A stretch of 63,485 nt of DNA, filler included, from Bigelowiella natans CCMP2755 (lineage: Eukaryota > Protista > Cercozoa), in assembly GCA_000320545.1 (NCBI GenBank). It is 4 parts of 4 records of this genome, joined end to end, with 100 filler letters (N's around TTAATTAATTAA, not from the genome) between each part and the next. Parts side by side here need not be neighbours in the genome. Positions count along the whole stretch, not along the records: positions 1 to 12,634 come from ADNK01003152.1; 3 more parts are not named here. One strand, written 5' to 3'. Every line of letters starts with the position of its first letter. Positions within the stretch are counted from its first letter, which is position 1. Under the pieces are notes generated by a model. It saw nothing but the letters and a program-made list of their open reading frames with translations, searched no databases and had not been told where the DNA came from. The translations under genes were made by a program, and so were the position numbers. Of this stretch, positions 1 through 12,634 are shown piece by piece.

Positions 1-169
1 ACGATAGGAGATATTATGTATGAAGCATTGCAAACATCATCACCCACTTACTCACGCCCCCCCCCCCCCCCTCCCTTCACACTCGCTCTCACTCACTGTT
101 CGCGCTATTCGACTCGCCGGGCGGCTTCCTCCTCCTCCTCCTCCTCCTCCTCCTCCTCGCAATAATAGG

Positions 170-502
170 CGCTGCTGAAAGCGCAGCGTAAGGTTATGGG
201 AGAAGCACGGAGAGAAGATATAGCAGCGAGGAAAAAATTCGAGGCAGAAATGAAAGCAGGCAGAGGCCAAAGCCAACAAGGTGACAATTATCTAATTCAT
301 GGAAATGATGATATTCCCCCCCCCCCCCCCTCCCCTCTCTGTTTCTCTATATTCCTCCTCCCTTGCACTCAAACAGACGCGGCTTGCCAGCGATTTAGAA
401 ATAATGTCATATCTTGTAAATGCTGCACACCCCATGATCTCGGATGGTACATGGTACACTGCAGGTCTTTCACAACAGCAGCAGAAAGACGCCAGGACGT
501 GA
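170..502 (+). CDS. Probable 3' exons of a gene entering from outside the window (unknown product)
   Basis: AG/GT-bounded segments (170-280 ALLKAQRKVMGEARREDIAARKKFEAEMK..., 377-415, 465-502) can be joined in phase to a TGA; no recognisable domain. Confidence 0.35.
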
Positions 503-899
503 TGGCTAAGAGACGAAATTCGGTCGTCACTCTTGGATCATAACCACTTAGCGTTACCGCAGACTTGCCGCTGTCGCTGGTGCTCGTTATTTATTAAGCT
601 CCGCAAGCACTTCGGTTCTCACTGCTTTGCATTTCAACCGCCCAATACGTACATATGCCAATAAGAAGGCTATGCTTTCATCATGCATAGTAATCGAGAC
701 AGCAACAGTCCTGTGCACGCACACATCATCGCGCTTCGGTGCTGCACAGCTGTGCTTTCATGCGTACGTACACACGCGTCGCCGGTAGTGAATTTAATTT
801 GGAGCGCTATCAGCCAATAATGACGTGAGCAGCGAGGAAAAAATTCGAGGCAGAAATGAAAGCAGGCAGAGGCCAAAGCCAACAAGGTGACAATTATCT
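222..899 (+). repeat. Exact 72-bp dispersed duplication (222-293 and 828-899)
   Basis: agcagcgaggaaaaaattcgaggcagaaatgaaagcaggcagaggccaaagccaacaaggtgacaattatct is present twice. Confidence 0.95.
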
Positions 900-1298
900 G
901 CACGTACACATGCAATAGATGCTGCACAAACGTATAATTATATACATTCACAGTGCCGCGGCTTTGCACAGCTGTATACATTGGGATGATAACTGAAAAA
1001 AAACAAATTCATTAAATCCGAATCATGCTAGCATGCCAGTTTTCCCCATCTTTGAGTGCGATCCTCGAGGCCTCCTTTCGCAGTGCTTCCAGCTCTTCAC
1101 TATTGCGACCAGCGTTAGCTCTCGCACGCCCTTTTTCTCCCCCCGACGATCCCCTGTCTCATGGTGTCTTACGTCTCTGTATAAAGCCGACGCGGGGATG
1201 CGTGCCCCCCCCCCGCGCGCACGATCGAATCCAGGCTGCGGAGAGCGCTCGAGGAGAGGCGCCTCCATTTAGACGCATCATATTATCAGTTCTTGGAT

Positions 1299-2720
1299 TC
1301 AATGCCAATCTATCGAGGTTCCCGGACCGAGAGGTTCATCCAGATCCAATGTAACGGTGGCGTTTGCGAATTCCCGTCGCCACCGATACGCGCCCTCCTG
1401 CGTTCGTGGCCCCAAAGGCGGCCCCAGCGGTTTGTCGAGAAGCGAATACCACTCGCTCGGAGCGGCGCATGTATCTGGAGCGTCTGGACAGGGGACGAAG
1501 CCCTGATGCAGTTCGTACCTGTGCGTGCGTGCGTGCGTGTGTGTGTGTGTGTGCGCGCGCGCGCGCGTGTTTCATATCGCACTCAGCGGTGCCTGTTTCG
1601 CATGGGGGTTTGCACTTGCATTTGCATTAGGATAGGGATATGCCCGTGTCAAGTACGCACCAGACTGCTTGCGTGAAGTAGGTTCGTTCGTTCGCTACGA
1701 GGAGAAACGAAGCGAGGTTGAAGGGGAGATACTTGAGAAGCTGAGCGCGCCAGGCTTCGTAGAGCTGAGAACTGGTACCCTCGGGCGTGGTATTATTGTA
1801 CGGGTCGTTCGCGCTAAACGAGGGCCACCTGATGGAAAACGCAACGATCGGATCTGTGAGTACAAGTCCCCTCGATAAACACTAGGACTTGCGCGCAAAG
1901 AGTACTATTTCGATGATGGTTGCGCGCGTCGTCGTCGTCGTCGTTGTTGTTGCTGCTGTTGTTGTACCCATTCGTGAAGCCGGTGTACGGTCCGGCCCAG
2001 AAGGAGAGAAACACGTGCTTGGTAGCGTTTTGCGCCGCCCACTCTACGTTCGCGAGGGTATCAGCGCATTTGTCTTTGAGGAGGAGGCCGGTGGATGGAT
2101 CGACCTGGCATTTTTGGTTGGGTGCTTCGTCGTAAGTGGATGGGGTCAATTACAGGGATTTCGGCTAAAAAAGAAAAACTGAGGGCAGACGGGGGGCAAA
2201 CGGAGACCTGTTCGAAGGCTGCGTAATGCTCGTTTTGCACGGCGCCGACATGGTTTATAATGCGCCGATTGTGCGGGTCGCTAGGACTCTGGTCATACTC
2301 CGACAACCCATTGCCAAGTACAATCCCACCGTTCGTCTGGTCGAAAGACTGTTGTAAAGCTTGGATCATACTCAATTTCGCTTCATAGAGGGCTTGGAGG
2401 CGCGTAGGATTGATGCCAGATATAATCTCATAGCCGGAGTTGTCAGCAAGGACCCCGTCGATCAATCGTGTGCTGTTGGTGCCGCTAAGAGGAACAGACA
2501 CCCACCACGCAGCGGCCTCGCTGTTGGTGAAATCGATGCGGGGATGGCCGTTCTCTACGATAATCTTCCCGCTGTCGTCGCGGAGCCACCATTCTGGATG
2601 AGCCGCAAGTGTGGCGTTGGCTGAATAGCAGTGGATCCCAGCGTGGTCCGTGCTCCAGTAGAATAACACCTTGATCTTCGGGTTAGCCTCTTTCAGTTGC
2701 GCGGCAATTTCGTAAATCGC
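1299..2720 (-). CDS. Glycoside hydrolase, GH168 / PF14885 (GHL15)-like; 4 exons seen, 5' exons not found
   Basis: Exons ~2720-2208, 2104-1968, ~1828-1661 and ~1518-1299 splice in phase: AAQLKEANPKIKVLFYW...HPEWWLRDDSG...IDFTNSEAAAWW...IDGVLAD...GNG...NEHY...FNLASFLLVANERTYF...WYSLLDKPLGPPLGPR...WRREFANATVTLDL...IDWH*. This matches my recollection of the family motif pattern. Confidence 0.75.
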
Positions 2721-2899
2721 CTGACGTGAATCGTTAGACGGAAAATGCCATTAAGTTGTTGCAGCACATTCGCGTGCCTGTCTACAATAGCGACGCGTAC
2801 AACAGCTCGCGAACTTTCTGGCTGTTAGTGTGGGGTGAGCATGACTATCCCCCGGAGCCCCCCCCTCCACCCCGTTGACCACATAGAGGCATCTTATCA

Positions 2900-5780
2900 T
2901 AATAATAATGATTTGTGACTCGATTTATGAAAGAGATGTGTACAGACACATGTTAGTACAATCGTGCGTTTCCACAACCAACCTGTTCGGTCCTTATTCC
3001 TTGGTTATCGCCGGTGCACTTCTCGAGAGAGGCTATTTTGTAGTGAGAGGCGATAAAGCCCGCTTGATCATTCGAAAGCAGGGAGTAGCCGAAGTCTCCC
3101 CACCTAACGACAACAGATTAGTGAGGTGATGCCGAACATCAGCGCTTAGCTTGTTTCTAGTACCAGGAATCCGCAGCCGTATCCCACCCGTGTTCCCACA
3201 CTCCTCCCATCGTAGATACTTCACCCAGATATGCGTCCGCCGGGGAACTTGGCAACATAAGCGCGGCTGCAAGAAGGACGTCGTACAGCATAGCAGGCTA
3301 CAGCAGGGATGTCTACCCGTACTCGATTAGATGTGTACGGGGAAGAGGTGGGGCCAGAGCAGTAACGCACTCCGCAACGTGTAACGCCACTGTTCGTGAT
3401 ATCGGACAGGGAGGCCTGCTTTTGTTCGAAAACGCACGGGATTTAGAGTATCCATACCAATCATTGTCGCGGTTTCTAAATTCAGTGCAATCAGGTAGGT
3501 AACAGTGTGTTCCTTGTCACATCCGTTTCGTGTTGGAGCGAAACGGTCTTTGCTGAAGAACCGGCATGAATGCCGTAAACTATTTACATGTGACAATTTA
3601 TTTGGCATGTCGTAAGCGCGGAATATCCTATTACATCTTCTCAACACATGGCCCAACGAAACGGGTGGATTAACCCTTCTTCTCCGGCGTGATAAAGGAG
3701 ATTAATGAAAGGCTAAAAGTAATAGCGACAAAATGAAATTAATGTCGCATATATTCAATAGCATGAATACAGTCTTTCCAGAGGTTTCTGGCTCTCCAAT
3801 TTGTGTCTGAAAACGCCATCAGCACTGCGAAACCAAGGAAGAAGCAAACCAAACGACGAAGGGTGAAGCTTCTAGCTACAAAACAGAACAAACCCAGGAA
3901 CGGCTGCTTGAGTTCGCACCCACGCCTGAGTGACCGCAGACGCAAGGAGGAAGAAAAGGATACTGCACTTACGGCTGGTTGAAGCAATAGAGAGCAGAAG
4001 ATCAATCCATTTGTAGAAGACGAACGACGAGTTTTTGTTCATTCCAGCTCCTTTTAGACACACACTAATTCTGAAGAAGAAAGGGGACGCCTAAAGGCCA
4101 AACGAACTACAATGTATACGATAAAGCGATCACTGGATAAGCAGCCGATGGTGCCTGCCAAGGATTTACCGGGAAAAAAGGGGGGAGAAAGTTCGGACGG
4201 TGGTAATTACATGGCCAAGGTCATCTCCATGTGCGAGCCTTACGACGTTCCAAAATCGAAGAAGAAAACTAAAAAACTTGCAGTATGGAAAGGCGCGAAA
4301 AAGGTATCCATTACTAAGTCAGAACATGTTTATCGTGTAGCGAATTTGATGTACGGGTGATATGCAAAGGTATACTACGCGTAGACCATTCCAAATCTGA
4401 AAACATCTGCGATTGATTTTGCGAGTCCCCCTTTCAGCCGATCGCTCGCATCAGCCAACCATGTCATTGGATATAGCAAGGCTTTGATTTATGCTGTGTA
4501 CACTCAGTTTGCTCCTGATCCCGAGAAGCATGGTACCTTCTTGTCCACTGACGAAGGATGCTTCGGGCGCTATGAGTATATCAAACAGGGATACGGAGCC
4601 ACAATCTCCTACAAGGACAAGAACTTCGAAAAGGAGAAGAAAGGTGGGAGGAAATTTCAAAGAATAAGGATACGCATTAAAAATTCACCCATACTAGTGG
4701 GGGTGGAGGGAAAGGAGCGTAAGAGAGCAGAGGGATTGTATCTAGGACAGATTTGCTGATTAAGTAAAGAAGGCCGACAATATGCCTGCAGCCACCATAC
4801 GTAGTAAATAGTCATTTATTCTTTTTATCTGTCAAATCACGGGTCTTGACTGATTCTTATGATGACTGTGGATTAGCTACCGCTTGCCTTCGCAATGCAC
4901 CGTTCGGGTCAAAAGGCGCTCCCCGTCGTGATGAATTCCACCAGCACATCGCACAGTTGCAGTGGAAGGAACTTCTTGAAAAGGAAAAGCGTTTCAACAA
5001 AGCCACAATGGTACTTTCTTTGAATTTCCACCTTTGCGGAAAGTGAAAGCGCGCGTGGATATATGATGACGTCGTAGCAGAAATGATAGATAGTTTCTGC
5101 GTTAGACCTATTTATCCACATACATAAACAGTGTGTACATGTATGTGTGTGTAATATATAAATTTTATATATTTCTGCTTAAGGCCGTCAGCATATCTGA
5201 ATTTCATATTGATATATTTCTTCCAACAACAAAAGGACAAAAATCGGGCTAGCGCAGAGGCACCTACGACCGACGCTCCACTCTCTGCTGCAGCGACCAA
5301 GAAGAAAATATACGCCTATGATAGGGCAAAGGGTAACTTGAGCAAGGACTCAGGATCTTCGACTTTCAACAACAACTGGAAAACTACCACGAACCAATGG
5401 ATTCAAAAGAAAGGGTACGGAATCAAAGAGGTCAACAGAGGCCCTATGGTGACGTCCTCGTGCAATTATGGCAATTTTGATCTAAATGCGATCGAAAGGC
5501 CAAAGCATGCGCGTGTATCCGTCACGAAGGAGTTCAACGATATCTCACATTTGAGCTAAAGTAGTCGTTTCCTCATCTTGCAGCACGCGACAAGATAGAG
5601 CAGAAAGAGGATGAAAATATAACCCCAATTGCCACAGAAATACGCCACTCGAAGCATTATGTATGGCCAGCACCAACACAACACACGTCCACCTTTACGT
5701 TCGGAACGCACTTCGAACCCGTCCATCCTTACAGAATACTGCATCATCTCTCGCAGCCGCATCCGTGTTCATGATTAAAG
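2900..5780 (+). pseudogene. Decayed coding sequence of unknown origin (possible TE or captured gene)
   Basis: Microsatellite-free stretch of short Lys-rich ORF fragments (4112-4360, 4484-4759, 4846-5046, 5209-5559) broken by stops and frame changes; no family recognised. Confidence 0.3.
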
Positions 5781-5939
5781 ATGTAATGCCTTAATAAAAG
5801 TAGAGTTGTATGATACGGAATTGCATTGTAAATAGTTGATACTATCTTGCTGCAATGTTGACATACGGCGAGCCATTGTATTCGAAGCGCCGTGTGCTTA
5901 TTTTACGCCTCATAGCAGAATATGTAGCGAGGTCGTGCG

Positions 5940-6395
5940 TCGCGTATGTGAGACGGATGCAATGAAAGGTGGTTAAATATTTTCAATCAATGATCATCCC
6001 GTCATGTAAGACGGATGTAATAAATCAAATATATTGCATTTGTTCAATGGTCATCCGTCATCATGCATGTGTAGCTGTGCAAAACGTAACAGCGGCTATG
6101 GACTATAGGACAGCGCTAATGTTGAATTCGTCATGCGTACGTAAGCATATAGCTGTGCAAAGCAGCGGCGGCGGCTAGCAGCTATGCTGTTTTGCCGCAT
6201 CAGGTAGCAGAGCGTAGCGTGCCGCCGTGTAGAATCCGGAAAATGCTACAGCGCGCTCATTGGATGCACAATGGTGAATGCTATAATGCTATACAAGCTA
6301 CGTACATTGCTAGATTGGGATGCGACCATTGATGATGGATTCAAATTAGTTCATTCATCACACCCGTTTCACATGCCATGGCGCCCTGGCGATGC

Positions 6396-6426
<31 letters not shown>

Positions 6427-6600
6427 TGCGTACATATGCCATTGATGACGATTGGAAAGATTTAACCATATCATGCTACGTACATCCGTCATATAGTCAG
6501 TCTCACATGTATGAGACGGATATATATAATGAATTGCACAGCTACATTAGGATGACCATTGAAACAATTTAAACATTTCATTACATCCGTCTCATATATA
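5940..6600. mobile_element. Foldback/MITE-like non-autonomous repeat with imperfect inverted arms
   Basis: 5946-5967 atgtgagacggatgcaatgaaa vs reverse complement of 6576-6597 atatgagacggatgtaatgaaa; ttcaatggtcatcc...tgtagctgtgcaa (~6043-6082) is inverted at ~6534-6563. The same motifs recur at ~960-1000, ~45000-45055 and ~49280-49670. Confidence 0.55.
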
Positions 6601-6629
6601 ATGAAACGTTTCACATGTATATAAATATA

Positions 6630-6674
<45 letters not shown>

Positions 6675-7015
6675 GCTCGCTAGACATGCGCGTAATATTG
6701 CCTGTACAATCACCAATACATTGCGCCATCGATCGTCAGTGCGTCCACGCCATTCACAAGCCTGCACATGACATATGAGACCTGTTGCTTTACCATTTAT
6801 TTAGTCCGATACATTTGATCGCATTCAACGTGCGGTTATGTGACGACGACCAATATGATGCATGGACGATGCTATTTGAACATGCGAGACGATGCATAAT
6901 GATAGACATATAGTGGCTGAGGTAGCCAGGTAGCCTATCATCATTGACAACCACCGCAAAGCCGTACCTCTCCCATTGCTGCTGGCAAAGCAGTTATTAG
7001 CAGCAACACAATTAT

Positions 7016-8369
7016 CTACTCGTCCTTTTGCTGTTGTTGATGAAGCATCCCATCACGATAATCGGTAATAACTTCGTTCAGTGTTGCCCTTTTCTCACGA
7101 GCGAACTGTGCATACATCCCACACACGCGTGCATGCATAAAAATTTCAGACATGTATGATGATTAAGACTGTATCGCTTTTGGCTGGCACTAGCCTACTC
7201 CCCTCGCTTTTATTACTGTACATTCAACTATTACCTCAACGAGAAGACGGTATTTCGACTCGAGCAGTCCCCGGACGGCTTCTCTGTGCCGAATAATGAG
7301 CACCTACGTGTGCGTTTCAAGCACACGTCAAAATACTATCAAATTCTTCCAAATTCAATATAACAGCATCAGCAGCAGAAACACCGGTAGGAGACGTGGT
7401 AGTGACAGTTGAGGAGGTGCGTGGACGAAGGCATGGCGATGATGACTGTGATGATGCTGCAATGATGATGAGTCATCAGAGCCTCTCTCTACAGCTGCTT
7501 CTACTAGTATAATAAATAACTACTACCACTACTATCGTAATTGCAACTACACACCGTTACAGTGATTCCTCCTAGGATACTGCCTATAATCAACGAAGTT
7601 GCGCTCGCGATGGGAAGAACTACAAAGCCTGCAGAAGGAGGAGTAGTAGTTTTAATACGGCGCCGATTGAGCTAGAGATGACTCCAAGAGTAGTTATTCT
7701 GTGAATTACGATGCACTTCCATCCCCTGCCCCCAAAACTCACCCACGCCAATGCTGATTATCATGCTGATGAGAACGATCCAGCTGCATGCCACGATGGC
7801 AATCTGAGTGGCGGGAGCAAACACAAGCAGGACGCGTGAGGTAATAATATCGACGAAAGGTGGTGCGGTGGTGAGGTGGTGAGGGCGCTTACCGCGGCGA
7901 AAAATGATACACATGAGAATATGAATGCTGCGATTAGACTGAATAGAAGCAGCCCGCATCTGCAACATAAGGACACGAGGGCGTGAGCGACTCCTTCCTA
8001 CAGTTGTTAAGGAAAGGAACAAGCGAGAGAGGAGATTGACTCACCCGATGCCGCAGAGCACGACAATCGCAGTTCCCACGCTGGCAGCCCGGATCCACCA
8101 CGGCTCATCTTTCAATCTCGCCCAGAGAAGATCAACGAAAGCGGGCACCTTCATTTACGGAAGATCGATGCAAGTAAAATACTTGTGTGGCTTTTCACGA
8201 TAAAAGGCATTGCTCTCACCCCTGCCAAAAACCCGAACATCGAGTGTACTTTGTTCCGAGATGGGTCTTCCTTGGATTCGAAGAACTTCGGCTCCAGTGG
8301 GGCGGAGACGTCCTCCTTCTTGCTCGCCCTCTCTGCCTCGACGTGGCTCGGGGGCGAGTGGCCATCCAT
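7016..8369 (-). CDS. Small membrane protein with an ~84-aa uncharged hydrophobic segment (oleosin/promethin-LDAF1-like architecture), 7 exons
   Basis: Seven exons join in phase: MDGHSPP...SRNK|VPAFVDLLWARLKDEPWWIRAASVGTAIVVLCGIG|CGLLLFSLIAAFIFSCVSFFAA|IAIVACSWIVLISMIISIGV|GFVVLPIASATSLIIGSILGGIT|VLIIRHREAVRGLLESKYRLLVE|FAREKRATLNEVITDYRDGMLHQQQQKDE*. The gene model is solid; the function is inferred. Confidence 0.75.
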
Positions 8370-8708
8370 CGTAATCCGGAAGAGTTCGTATGGGTTGTCT
8401 CCGATGAGGATATCGACGCTGTTTTATGGCAACGACAACGATTTCCCGGTACACCACACCGTTTTCGAAGGGGATTTTCATGCCCATCCCGAAAATACGC
8501 ATCCCGAACCAGGAAAGTTGAAACGCCTTGCATCTTCGTCCAGCGACATCGCTTTTCGTCTGGTCGGTCGGTGCGGATGACCTCGAGAAGACATGCCATA
8601 GAAAATGCACGGCGTTTCGATATATACGACAAGAAATTAAGACCTTTTTTTTTCCTCATTTCTTTAGACGGAGATCTACGAGCCGTCGTTGTGAGAAGGG
8701 ACACGAAA

Positions 8709-10101
8709 ATGGCATCGGAAGCGTACAGCGACGTCTACTACGCCGTGCACCAAGCCATGGAGCCGAGCATCAAGGGGCTTTGCATTGTACGTGATCTTGT
8801 TGTGAATTGCTCATCACTCACGCCGCGAAGGAGGGCGACTTGTCTTTGTTCGAACGAATCGATTCGAATTCGGTTGAATGGTAGTATGGCAGGTGGATTA
8901 CGCGAAATCGGGGCGCGCGAGCTGTAAGAAGTGCAGCAAAAAGATTGCGCAGGGTAGGTGGTGTCGTTTGCGTGATGCATCGACGCGGAGCTATTCGCGT
9001 GGCGGTGCCTGCGCAGATGTTCACTTGCCGCCGCCCCCCCCCCTTCCTCTTTTCGCACCCTTTCTAGATAGCGTCAGGATCGGCCGTAAAGTGAAGTCCC
9101 GCTTCCACGACGGATTCGAATTAAACTGGCTTCACCTTCACTGCGCTCTCTATTCTGGGTGTGTGCTCGCGATTCGGATTGAAAAGACGGCAATGGAGAC
9201 GGCACGTGTGCATATATGGTTTTGACGATGATTTTGATGCCTCCTCTTTCTAGGATCGGCTCCATCACACAGCTCAAAGGCTGGCGTTACCTACTACCCG
9301 ACGACGCGCGTAAGATTCGAGGTTATACTGGGGAAGTGCTTTCTCCCATGGTAATGCCGCACACACATCACGATGAGAGTGGGAGATCTGGAGAGGGTGG
9401 CTGCTTTGAGGCAAGGGGAGGAATTGCGATCGAACCACTAAAAAGAACTAATGTTTGGCAGGATGACGCGTTGTACACCAAGGAGACGAACTCGCGGGAG
9501 AAGGTACCATGTAAAGACTACACTTTGCAGAATATTCAAGGGAAGAACCCCGTAAGCTGCGCGGATAAGTGCGCCTATAGTTAACTTTGATTCGTGGTGT
9601 GGAAATCCTTCCTCCTTACCATTATTTGTGTGTAACAATCTGTATTCTCGCCTAACAGCTCGCACTCTCAATCGCAAGCAATGTGAAGAAGCCTCAAATG
9701 GTCGACATCCTAGCGGCCAACGGTTCACCCCTCCCCTCCCTCTCCCTCCCCACTTCTTCGTTTTGGGAAATAGACCAGAAAAGCGAGGGGGTGCGGAGAA
9801 GGGCGGAATGGACATCTTCTTCTTCTTCTTCTTCTTCTTCTTCTTCTTCTTCTCTGCACGCTGATAGATCAGACCGCAAATTGCTTGTGATTGTATTTGC
9901 AGGGGTGAATGAGATTAAGCCTTGGAACAAGAACATCGCTGCTCGTGTTATTGCAGAAGGCATGATCAACGGTATACTCACCAATACAGACAACTACAGA
10001 GAATTCCCGCTCTTAAATCCGATAAAACTCTGAATTATGTTGCTTTCTTAGCTCAAATAATCAACAAACAACCCCTTCTCCCCCCCCCCTCATCTCTCCG
10101 A

Positions 10102-10141
<40 letters not shown>

Positions 10142-10594
10142 AAGCAAACGATGCCTTCCCTCATGTTCGCACCAATCACGCAGGGAGAACTGCAAAGTGC
10201 GAAGTGTGCGGAGGAGGGGACACTCTTCGCTGCGCTGCTGGCATTGCGACATGTAGCGGGTACATTGCTATGCACGATTGTCCAACGTTGTCAAGACGAG
10301 GGGTCGTTTCGCGGGGATGGTGGGCAGAAGAAGCAGAGCAGTTATTCGATTGACCCGATGCTCGAGATGCTTCCTTCGCGTTGTCCCGTCGTTGAATTTT
10401 TGCGAGTCGTCATCATCATGCTGTAGTTACTCAATGTCGGTGGATTGCTTTCAGCTCGTGTATGGTAGTGAGTCGAGAAACTTATGTTTTGTGCTGCTGC
10501 TGTCGTTCAGGACGCTGAACGGCTTTATCACCTGTCCGGCGAGGCTGGCAACGAAAGAACCTGAAACGGTACACACACACACACACACACATAA

Positions 10595-10631
<37 letters not shown>

Positions 10632-10665
10632 TTGAATATCTGGTGCATAACCTCAACAATATATA

Positions 10666-10726
<61 letters not shown>

Positions 10727-10962
10727 GTAAAAATGTGCGTATGTGTGTACGCGCATAATATTTATTTATTTTATGCTTTCGAAAGGTTCCGATGGACGCT
10801 GCCTGGGACTGCAGTAATGAAAAGCAAGGTACTTGTATAACCCCTGTGTTGCTGCTGTTATTTTATCATCGTCATCATCACCGCAGTGTGTGATTGAGGA
10901 GATATGCGTGCTACGAGGGCTGCAGGGATGACAGTGACGATGATCACGATGATGATGATGAC

Positions 10963-10994
<32 letters not shown>

Positions 10995-11050
10995 CGATGA
11001 TGATGATGGCAAGCTGTTTTCTCCGACCTTTGTCCACCAAACAAATGATT

Positions 11051-11086
<36 letters not shown>

Positions 11087-11443
11087 TATATAGTGGCTAT
11101 GCGCGTGGGCGGATGAGAACGGTGCCGTGCCCGCCGCCACTTCTGCTTCGGGGAGCGGAGAAGCAAGCGATGGGGAGGAGGACGATAGCGATGACGACGA
11201 TGAAGATGACGTACGTGAGGTAGGTTGGGGGGGGTGTTTTTATTTTTACACAAACACATGCAAACCCATTCAATAATTGCCAGGTTTCCCTGCCCTTTTT
11301 GCCCTTCCCTTTAGTGGAGGGATGTGGAGGGGGGGGGGGGGGGGCTGCTGTTGGGGAGGAGCGTGGAGGCGTATGGAAAAATGCTTGTAAAGGACCTCAA
11401 GGCAGCGCTGCTGGCGAGAGGAATCAATCCAATACGGGGTACA

Positions 11444-11477
<34 letters not shown>

Positions 11478-11699
11478 TCTATGATAATGATGATGATGAC
11501 TCGACGACGATGATATCACGTAGATCTCGAAAGGAAAAAGGAGGCGGAAGGATCCAACCGCCGCCCAAGAATTGAAAGAGAAAAAGGAGACGAATAAGAA
11601 GAAAAAGAAGAAGAAGGGAGAGGGGAAGAAGGCAAGCAAGAAGTCAACCAAGGTCTTCAGCTCCTCTTCCGCGCGCGCGAGCGCGCATTGTATGCGTGC

Positions 11700-11741
<42 letters not shown>

Positions 11742-12476
11742 GGAAAAATCCAGATCTATGCACTCATAACACCGCTTGATTCGTAATGCGATGGTGCATA
11801 ACCCTCCTCTCTACCGGCAGAAGAAGAAGATGAAAGCAGGGGAGGACATGTACTGCCAGCCCCACCTCCCCATCAAGGGACCAGCCAGCACGCGGGAGAA
11901 AGAAGAGGAGGAGGAGGAGGAGGAGGAGGAGAAAGGCAAGAATGGCGGCGGCAAGGAATCAACCACAACACTCCGAAAAAGTATAACAGCTGAGGGGAAT
12001 GAACACTTGAAGGCTCAATACCCATATTGTTGTTGTTGTTGTTGCTGCTGCTGCTATCTTTGTTTGACTCACCGCTCGTACTAGCAGAGAGTGCCAAAGG
12101 GGACGTGTATTCGAGCGAGCGGTATATTGCCGCTGCCATCCTCACGTGTGGATTTCGCTCCTGTTGTGATGATTAGGCGGCCATTCGTTAAAACGGTTGG
12201 CAGAGGCGTTGTCACCCCCGGAGCCTAGCAGCGCTATTCTGAGCAAAGTGAGTGGCGCGCACGGGGGGGTGGGGGGGGTTGTTTCTATTTCACTGAGATG
12301 AGGAAAGGGAGGAAAGGAGAAGATGAAGAAGAAGAAGAAGATGATGATGACGACGCCGTCTCATTGCTTTTATTCTAATATCATCGTGAAATGAGGAGAG
12401 ACTTGTTATCTGCCCCCTTCAGGATGAATACGCACCGTCAGGATCTATTTACGTAGCAGGCGATGGGGTACTTAGG
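8709..12476 (+). CDS. PARP1-like protein, N-terminal part (zf-PARP, PADR1-type Zn domain, SAP-like motif), truncated by scaffold gap
   Basis: Spliced YYA|VDYAKSGRASCKKCSKKIAQ...VRIGRKVKSRFHDGFELNWLHLHC (zf-PARP); IAEGMING|RTAKCEVCGGGDTLRCAAGIATCSG|TLNGFITC (PADR1-like); YGKMLVKDLKAALLARGI (SAP-like). The last exon GSIYVAGDGV resembles the lead-in to a WGR domain. No catalytic domain is visible before the gap. Confidence 0.75.
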
Positions 12477-12634
12477 CAAGGGGGGGGGGGGGGGGGGGGA
12501 AAAAAAAAATCAGATATTCTGATATACTCTTCACCACCCATACCGGATATGTTTATATATATATGTACATATATAAAACCAAATTAACGGGAGATGAGAG
12601 GAAGAGAGAAGAGACAGAAGAAAGATTATTTTTT

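Follow-up and report, generated by a model that had tools for sequence, protein, structure and literature searches.

Copies of a LINE family in Bigelowiella natans differ at TA versus TG/CA, a probable footprint of strand-symmetric TpA hypermutation

The window, by which we mean the whole stretch of DNA analysed, spans 63,485 nucleotides of Bigelowiella natans CCMP2755 (assembly GCA_000320545.1) and joins parts of four records, positions 1–12,634 coming from ADNK01003152.1. It is eukaryotic, microsatellite-rich sequence: a 12.6-kb portion gave 41 tandem-repeat rows, among them (TA)n, (CA)n, (TGA)n, poly-C, and poly-G, with microsatellites or homopolymer runs at 57–75, 316–335, 11329–11344, 12480–12499, and many other positions. 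The cluster of repeats described below is flanked by two host ORFs, one at 2061–2669 on the minus strand with a GHL15 glycosyl-hydrolase-like domain (1.7e-11), the other at 8878–9225 on the plus strand with the start of a PARP-type zinc finger (4e-8, below the cut-off). The genome contains at least 25 LHC matches, and a genome search for phycobilisome returned no match. All eight polyubiquitin junctions carry a one-codon insertion, which we take to be a mark of Cercozoa and Foraminifera; seven read RGG-S-MQIF (Ser), one has Phe, and none lacks the insertion (loci G000:C574:31302-31564, C3384:4812-5305, C694, C1358, and C2661, with several junctions 231 nt apart). The insertion places the genome in Rhizaria, and in combination with the LHC genes it indicates a photosynthetic cercozoan, hence a chlorarachniophyte.

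Between positions 5946 and 6605 lie at least five 5′-truncated 3′ ends of one non-LTR retrotransposon (LINE) family, in both orientations and with one nested in another. The first, on the minus strand at 5946–6003, is a terminus of ∼55 nt (nhmmer match 6001–5950) in which CA replaces TA near the element 3′ end (GATGCAAT) and TG replaces TA at the tail junction; its type, listed as TGAGACGGATGCAATGA, makes up 25 of 100 genomic copies in a pattern count over the first 100 of 922 matches. It adjoins a second minus-strand terminus of ∼120 nt at 6004–6128 (nhmmer match 6128–6009), which belongs to a sublineage with TAAGACGG...TAATAA; the repeat search aligned 5946–5966 and 6004–6024 as direct copies with 86% identity. 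Among the matches listed, TAAGACGGATGTAATAA is present in 6 of 100 genomic copies and TAAGACGG in 17–20 of 100. A diverged 3′-terminal fragment on the plus strand, ending in ...CATCCGTCA, follows at 6444–6491 (nhmmer match 6444–6490).

The nested pair occupies the right-hand side of the cluster. Sequence reading and the repeat search place an older antisense terminus at 6510–6533 on the minus strand (GAGACGGAT plus a TA-rich expansion), which is split by an insertion at 6534–6593 and continues beyond 6605. The insertion, 60 nt long and on the plus strand, is a young copy of the LINE 3′ end in sense orientation (nhmmer match 6530–6593), with the common 17-mer state TGAGACGGATGTAATGA on the opposite strand, and is bounded by a 12-bp target-site duplication (ATATATAATGAA) whose left copy (6522–6533) and right copy (6594–6605) are 100% identical. 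Inverted arms of 26 nt at 5945–5970 and 6573–6598 are 88% complementary in the repeat search. A (CA)16 microsatellite at 6395–6426 between the fragments and a (TA)n microsatellite at 6618–6674 adjoining the cluster are given for context only, LINE 3′ ends often adjoining (TA)n. With up to three mismatches allowed, the core 14-mer of the repeat occurs seven times in the window against 1.15 expected, a number reached by 1 of 200 shuffles.

An earlier sequence-only reading had proposed that these copies differ specifically at TA versus TG/CA, and sequence reading, repeat search, and genome-wide counts all bear this out. As it described, 5946–5967 and the reverse complement of 6576–6597 are separated by two mismatches, at both of which the 6576 copy has TA, whereas the 5946 copy has one TG and one CA. 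The 6004 copy does add two more such differences, but TA is there a minority sublineage state (TAAGACGG 17–20%, TAATAA 8–9%). The TA cited near position 6521 has to be withdrawn as a substitution state: the copy at 6513 reads GACGGATA..., a (TA)n-like expansion after GACGGAT (GAT-ATATA-TAAT) with no clean substitution, and the difference is an indel.

What is repeated here is the 3′ terminus of a dispersed APE-type non-LTR retrotransposon (LINE). At up to one mismatch the 91.4-Mb genome has 1,937 matches to the core 14-mer, compared with 30 for a reversed control. Across 60 extended genomic copies one end is constant: one strand reads GAGACGGATG..., and the complementary strand runs through ...CATCCGTCTC into AT-rich or (TA)n sequence. 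The opposite (5′) ends vary, such that copies of 95 nt to ∼4.9 kb have the 3′ end ...CATCCGTCTC in common. Target-site duplications of 10–16 bp are found in the flanks of three sampled loci (L002, L005, and L012), next to the 12-bp example in the window. Variable truncation, target-site duplications, and endonuclease and reverse transcriptase (RT) ORFs together rule out a MITE or terminal-inverted-repeat element. A stem-loop at the 3′ end (−6.5 kcal/mol, z −0.95) is no better than those of shuffled sequences.

The coding region has an APE-type endonuclease upstream of the RT (PF14529, 1.1e-14, 54.7 bits against a cut-off of 27.4, at L062:164-1750:-). The RT itself matches PF00078 (RVT_1) with E 4.1e-6 and 27.1 bits, just below the cut-off of 29.6; hypermutation of the copies lowers the score. 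One copy (C3248) has a single ORF of 1173 aa, and the ORF ends ∼25 nt before the LINE 3′ end. The RT and C-terminal frames differ in two further copies and overlap there by ∼200–370 nt (L053:2142-2337 and L033:2209-2578; reference positions about 3768–4282), owing either to a frameshift common to both copies or to the scarcity of stops in this DNA. Several sublineages with a common conserved 3′ module of ∼110 nt were distinguished by nhmmer. An RT-region 29-mer matches only seven genomic places, and most copies are therefore short. Our sample of genome DNA comprised 66 loci (∼250 kb) and 53 copies of the family, 7 of them long and many picked through a TA-containing 14-mer or BLAST similarity.

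We quantified the dinucleotide states at individual sites of the 3′ end, using for the first site the first 100 of 922 genomic matches, which are listed in contig order and hence unbiased at degenerate sites. The TA of TGAGACGGATG-TA-ATGA appears as TA in 59 copies, CA in 25, and TG in 16, and never as CG, a state that the sequence-only reading had also found lacking. The six non-TA A:T sites of the same 17-mer show 14 variant bases per 600, and its five ordinary G:C sites, CpG included, show 10 per 500. Per site, variability at the TA is thus about nine-fold that of the other A:T sites (41 per 200 vs 14 per 600). The only other frequent variants of the 17-mer are two TG/TA toggles, TAAGACGG (17–20%) and TAATAA (8–9%), and since the 6004 copy has both, it is a member of a recurrent sublineage.

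A second example, GGCTACAGC versus GGCCACAGC, had been offered from the window and holds genome-wide: the TA of GCAGCGGC-TA-CA-GCGC is TA in 488 matches, CA in 46, TG in 37, and CG in 3, against CA>TA 11, CA>TG 1, and CG>TG 10 of 488 at the neighbouring CA and CG. Some TA-loss variant matches of GCAGCGGCTACAGCGC, here called block A, lie 18–24 nt apart (G000:C1794:28668-28707 and C1497:5441-5474) and resemble coding sequence made of GCN repeats; a few of the block-A variants counted are therefore false positives. In the 53-copy alignment, polymorphic dinucleotide columns fall into {CA,TG} (46), {CA,TA,TG} (28), and {CA,CG,TG} (11), against a single {AC,GT} control column. Certain TA/TG/CA states, such as that of a site 205 nt from the 3′ end, mark whole sublineages, and part of the TA loss was therefore inherited from source elements. 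We also considered whether 22 isolated CA↔TG double changes could be one-step tandem mutations; at one well-sampled 3′ site CA>TG occurred once and CA>TA 11 times, and separate resolutions of TA, either ancestral or newly arisen, fit better.

Away from the 3′ end, TA is almost eliminated. The full element has 15 TA where 324 are expected, the LINE body has an observed/expected ratio of 0.05, the RT region one of 0.02–0.1, and in the endonuclease region four copies contain no TA at all in ∼1.5 kb. CA and TG are correspondingly high in LINE bodies (1.6–2.1). LINE DNA as a whole gives ratios of 0.27 for TA (0–0.1 in the interior), 1.77 for CA, and 1.63 for TG, compared with 0.88, 1.27, and 1.26 in non-LINE DNA; host ORFs have TA at 0.5–0.75.

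Within the 250 kb sampled the depletion is restricted to LINE DNA: TA-poor islands belong to this LINE or adjoin a diverged LINE 3′ end, except for three. These three are CA/TG-rich with TA ratios of 0.09–0.18 (L019:1651-2250, L024:1651-2700, and L050:1801-2700), match neither LINE DNA nor proteins, and are probably other hypermutated elements. Non-LINE repeats in the sampled DNA amount to two pairs. An integrase-like ORF of the LTR-retrotransposon type (L051:2033-2803) has a TA ratio of 1.01, so not every transposon-like sequence is affected. CpG ratios are 0.6–0.75 in LINE DNA against 0.92 elsewhere, which hints at a modest loss of CpG in transposons beside the TA effect.

Because DNA free of TA cannot hold TAA or TAG, the TA-free bodies (L053, L062, L033, and L063) stay open over long distances in several frames of either strand, and the resulting spurious ORFs reach 322 aa in antisense. 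For the same reason, the lack of in-frame stops is ruled out as proof that copies are active. Such ORFs may be called as genes, inflate gene counts, and mimic intact elements.

The direction of change is given by the coding sequence. Translation of the reference copy yields no Tyr in either the endonuclease (521 aa) or the RT (370 aa), while His, Cys, and Trp are inflated. At a minimum of 28 columns, none of which is Tyr-fixed, copies disagree over a codon that may be Tyr (TAY), His (CAY), or Cys (TGY); one such codon is Tyr in 16 copies, Cys in 9, and His in 3, another Tyr in 18, His in 16, and Cys in 7. By class, 17 codon columns are Cys/His and 8 are Cys/His/Tyr. Cys and His at one position make sense only as the two decay products of a Tyr codon. 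Along the endonuclease region, 74 dinucleotide sites have both CA and TG among four copies and about three are still TA; this is close to the 7/8 expectation and implies roughly 85–100 ancestral TA sites that were resolved separately in each copy.

These data support TA as the ancestral state in the LINE. The core proposal of the sequence-only reading, an ancestral TA that disappears from each strand independently and with no involvement of CpG, agrees with the Tyr/His/Cys codons, the 74 CA/TG sites, the nearly equal outcomes on the two strands given below, and de novo changes reported in a recent preprint; of the sites it had cited in support, however, three have TA as a minority or indel state. 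It had also suggested a family consensus as the check on polarity. That check misleads in this family, because at erased sites the majority state is the derived TG or CA. A majority consensus of such a family will be wrong at every erased TA.

Losses on the two strands are balanced and independent of one another. TG:CA counts in four long copies are 74:74, 62:69, 71:76, and 68:74, with runs-test z values of −0.6 to 1.7, so that events were site-independent and strand-symmetric rather than a clustered burst on a single strand. Distant pairs of copies are discordant for CA versus TG at a rate of ∼0.5; in pairs that are 1.8–4% apart elsewhere the discordance is 0.26–0.37, which places much of the TA loss on terminal branches. 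From these comparisons we estimate that TA loss ran at the order of 100 times ordinary substitution. Between sublineages, pN/pS with TA-derived sites masked is ∼0.2, which implies that the source elements still worked while Tyr was being lost at random from their copies.

The erasure fades towards the ends of copies. Candidate TA sites are kept at 41–48% in the last 150 nt, 10–14% at 150–600 nt, and 2–8% beyond 1.2 kb, a gradient that comes from few copies and is confounded with copy identity; the 41–48% in the last ∼150 nt applies even to long copies with erased interiors. Among sites more than 300 nt from the 3′ end, and again in few copies, 27% survive where the copy's own 5′ end is less than 250 nt away, compared with 4% beyond 1 kb.

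We consider it probable that a strand-symmetric TpA hypermutation, directed at the LINE and other foreign DNA, left the TA versus TG/CA differences as its footprint. In the proposed mechanism, T:A pairs of 5′-TA-3′ would be converted to C:G by A>G change on either strand, read as TpA>TpG or TpA>CpA. A site would become immune after one base change, since it is no longer TA, which would explain why CG is almost never seen. The process would target the LINE and other foreign DNA and leave host genes alone, erasing nearly every TA inside long copies, all Tyr codons included, while largely sparing the last ∼150 nt and short copies. It probably acts in place on genomic DNA, as the 2026 preprint saw de novo in integrated viral DNA of B. 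natans, and the chemistry may be adenine deamination, for example by the ADAT2-like candidate of the 2026 preprint.

Tentatively, the LINE copies may also archive how the editor is aimed, namely at a domain centred on long foreign inserts (through chromatin or small RNA, for example) rather than at a motif or at repeats. On this suggestion erasure would be complete inside copies longer than ∼1 kb, fading ∼250 nt from their own 5′ end and ∼150 nt from the 3′ end, and copies shorter than ∼700 nt would be mostly spared. The family would then persist because its short truncated copies, and the 3′ end on which propagation depends in cis, escape the targeting threshold.

The strongest competitor, although we regard it as unlikely, is that hypermutation was coupled to retrotransposition, by editing of the LINE RNA or first-strand cDNA or by RT infidelity opposite T/U in TA, so that copies were born mutated. 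It would account for LINE-like DNA being the only TA-free DNA in the 250 kb sampled, the integrase-like ORF having normal TA, and for the large share of loss on terminal branches; the spared 3′ ∼150 nt is where reverse transcription is primed, and errors in first- and second-strand synthesis together would mix CA and TG without strand runs. Against it, the preprint's signature arises de novo in a single-copy integrated NCLDV region and in a virophage region during vegetative growth, without reverse transcription, and RNA editing before truncation would not yield the difference in retention (27% vs 4%) by distance from a copy's own 5′ end.

Much less probable is that active LINE lineages were selected against UpA in their RNA, the loss of TA being adaptive and involving no hypermutation. 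UpA suppression is well documented in cytoplasmic RNAs and RNA viruses (PMC3829696); source lineages were under purifying selection (pN/pS ∼0.2), and some TA/TG/CA states mark whole sublineages. Taken together with random Tyr loss, however, the pN/pS value argues against selection for UpA avoidance: Tyr codons went to His or Cys at random, both at the same codon and one of them beside an RT motif, and close pairs are discordant at 26–37% of sites. A stretch of 1.5 kb with no TA at all also goes well past every degree of UpA suppression that has been reported, and host ORFs stand at 0.5–0.75.

We give very little weight to ordinary transitions in short AT-rich repeats that fell on TA by chance. 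Transitions are the commonest substitutions and the alignments in the window are only ∼22 nt long, but the roughly nine-fold variability at TA, the {CA,TG} count of 46 versus 1 for {AC,GT}, and the LINE-body TA ratio of 0.05 are not what chance would produce. Least credible of all is classical CpG methylation decay with CG ancestral at the TG/CA sites and TA as a secondary product: CA>TG double changes via CpG are reportedly the commonest adjacent variant in humans, and CpG in the LINE is mildly low (0.6–0.75), but CG accompanies TA less often than any other state (0 of 100 copies, 3 of 86 block-A variants, and 11 vs 28 columns), the 3′-end CpGs are stable (C>T 4 of 100, G>A 1 of 100, and CG>TG 10 of 488), and the Tyr codons prove TA ancestry.

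TpA hypermutation is already known in this species from the 2026 preprint; the LINE target, the erasure of Tyr, and the sparing of ends and short copies are additions to it. The family adds a resident retrotransposon of ∼2,000 copies to the integrated viruses already known as targets, and its hundreds of insertions of differing length and age offer material for deriving targeting rules. Change of Tyr codons to His or Cys codons supplies evidence of polarity that is independent of experiment. The process that the sequence-only reading had inferred from alignments of ∼22 nt was experimentally shown only in 2026.

The closest known system is that described in the mutation-accumulation study of B. 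natans, in which the per-generation mutation rate of two integrated viral regions was ∼6e-7 per site (Mettrop et al., bioRxiv 10.64898/2026.01.13.699255). The viral inserts gained 231 de novo mutations, 230 of which were A>G or T>C, all at TpA; the rate in resident DNA was ∼1000 times background, and the hypermutation was seen in some lines only (bioRxiv 10.64898/2026.01.13.699255). The same work found 324 TpA-poor coding sequences enriched for endonuclease-RT, RT, and DDE domains, and proposed adenine deamination by an ADAT2-like protein (bioRxiv 10.64898/2026.01.13.699255). Shared with the LINE are the species, the foreign nature of the DNA, A>G/T>C change only at TpA and on either strand, and depletion of TpA with enrichment of CpA and TpG. 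The preprint deals with two viral insertions and with dinucleotide statistics across the genome; specific to the present analysis are this LINE family, the replacement of Tyr by His or Cys, the run-free 1:1 resolution, and the spared 3′ ∼150 nt, 5′ edges, and short copies. The LINE footprint is also a historical one.

Fungal RIP resembles the LINE pattern as a near-saturating, context-specific transition hypermutation of transposon copies that spares host genes and is weaker at element ends and in short copies. The chemistry runs the other way: RIP converts CpA to TpA (C>T) and enriches TA, whereas in the B. natans LINE TpA becomes CpA or TpG and TA vanishes. RIP is thus rejected as the process itself, TA being erased and not enriched, and CA together with TG at one site lying beyond what RIP can produce. 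The hypermutated NCLDV insert is single-copy (bioRxiv 10.64898/2026.01.13.699255), so the process, unlike RIP, is not repeat-dependent.

Decay of CpG in vertebrate Alu and L1 elements through deamination of 5-methylcytosine offers a formal parallel, in that a self-complementary dinucleotide turns into TG or CA depending on the strand, independently at each site, and a majority consensus misleads at decayed sites. The unstable dinucleotide there is CG; in the B. natans LINE it is TA, the change is A:T>G:C, and CpGs are stable.

ADAR and APOBEC footprints on animal retroelements are likewise deaminase-type hypermutation of mobile or viral nucleic acids, and ADAR prefers a U immediately 5′ of the A that it edits. 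ADAR-type editing of sense-strand RNA, fixed by reverse transcription, is excluded as the source of the LINE pattern by a TG:CA ratio of ∼1:1 on the sense strand and a runs-test z of ∼0. ADARs are metazoan enzymes. The footprints of ADAR and APOBEC are strand-specific and clustered, in contrast to the strand-symmetric, unclustered outcomes in the LINE, whose host is a rhizarian alga.
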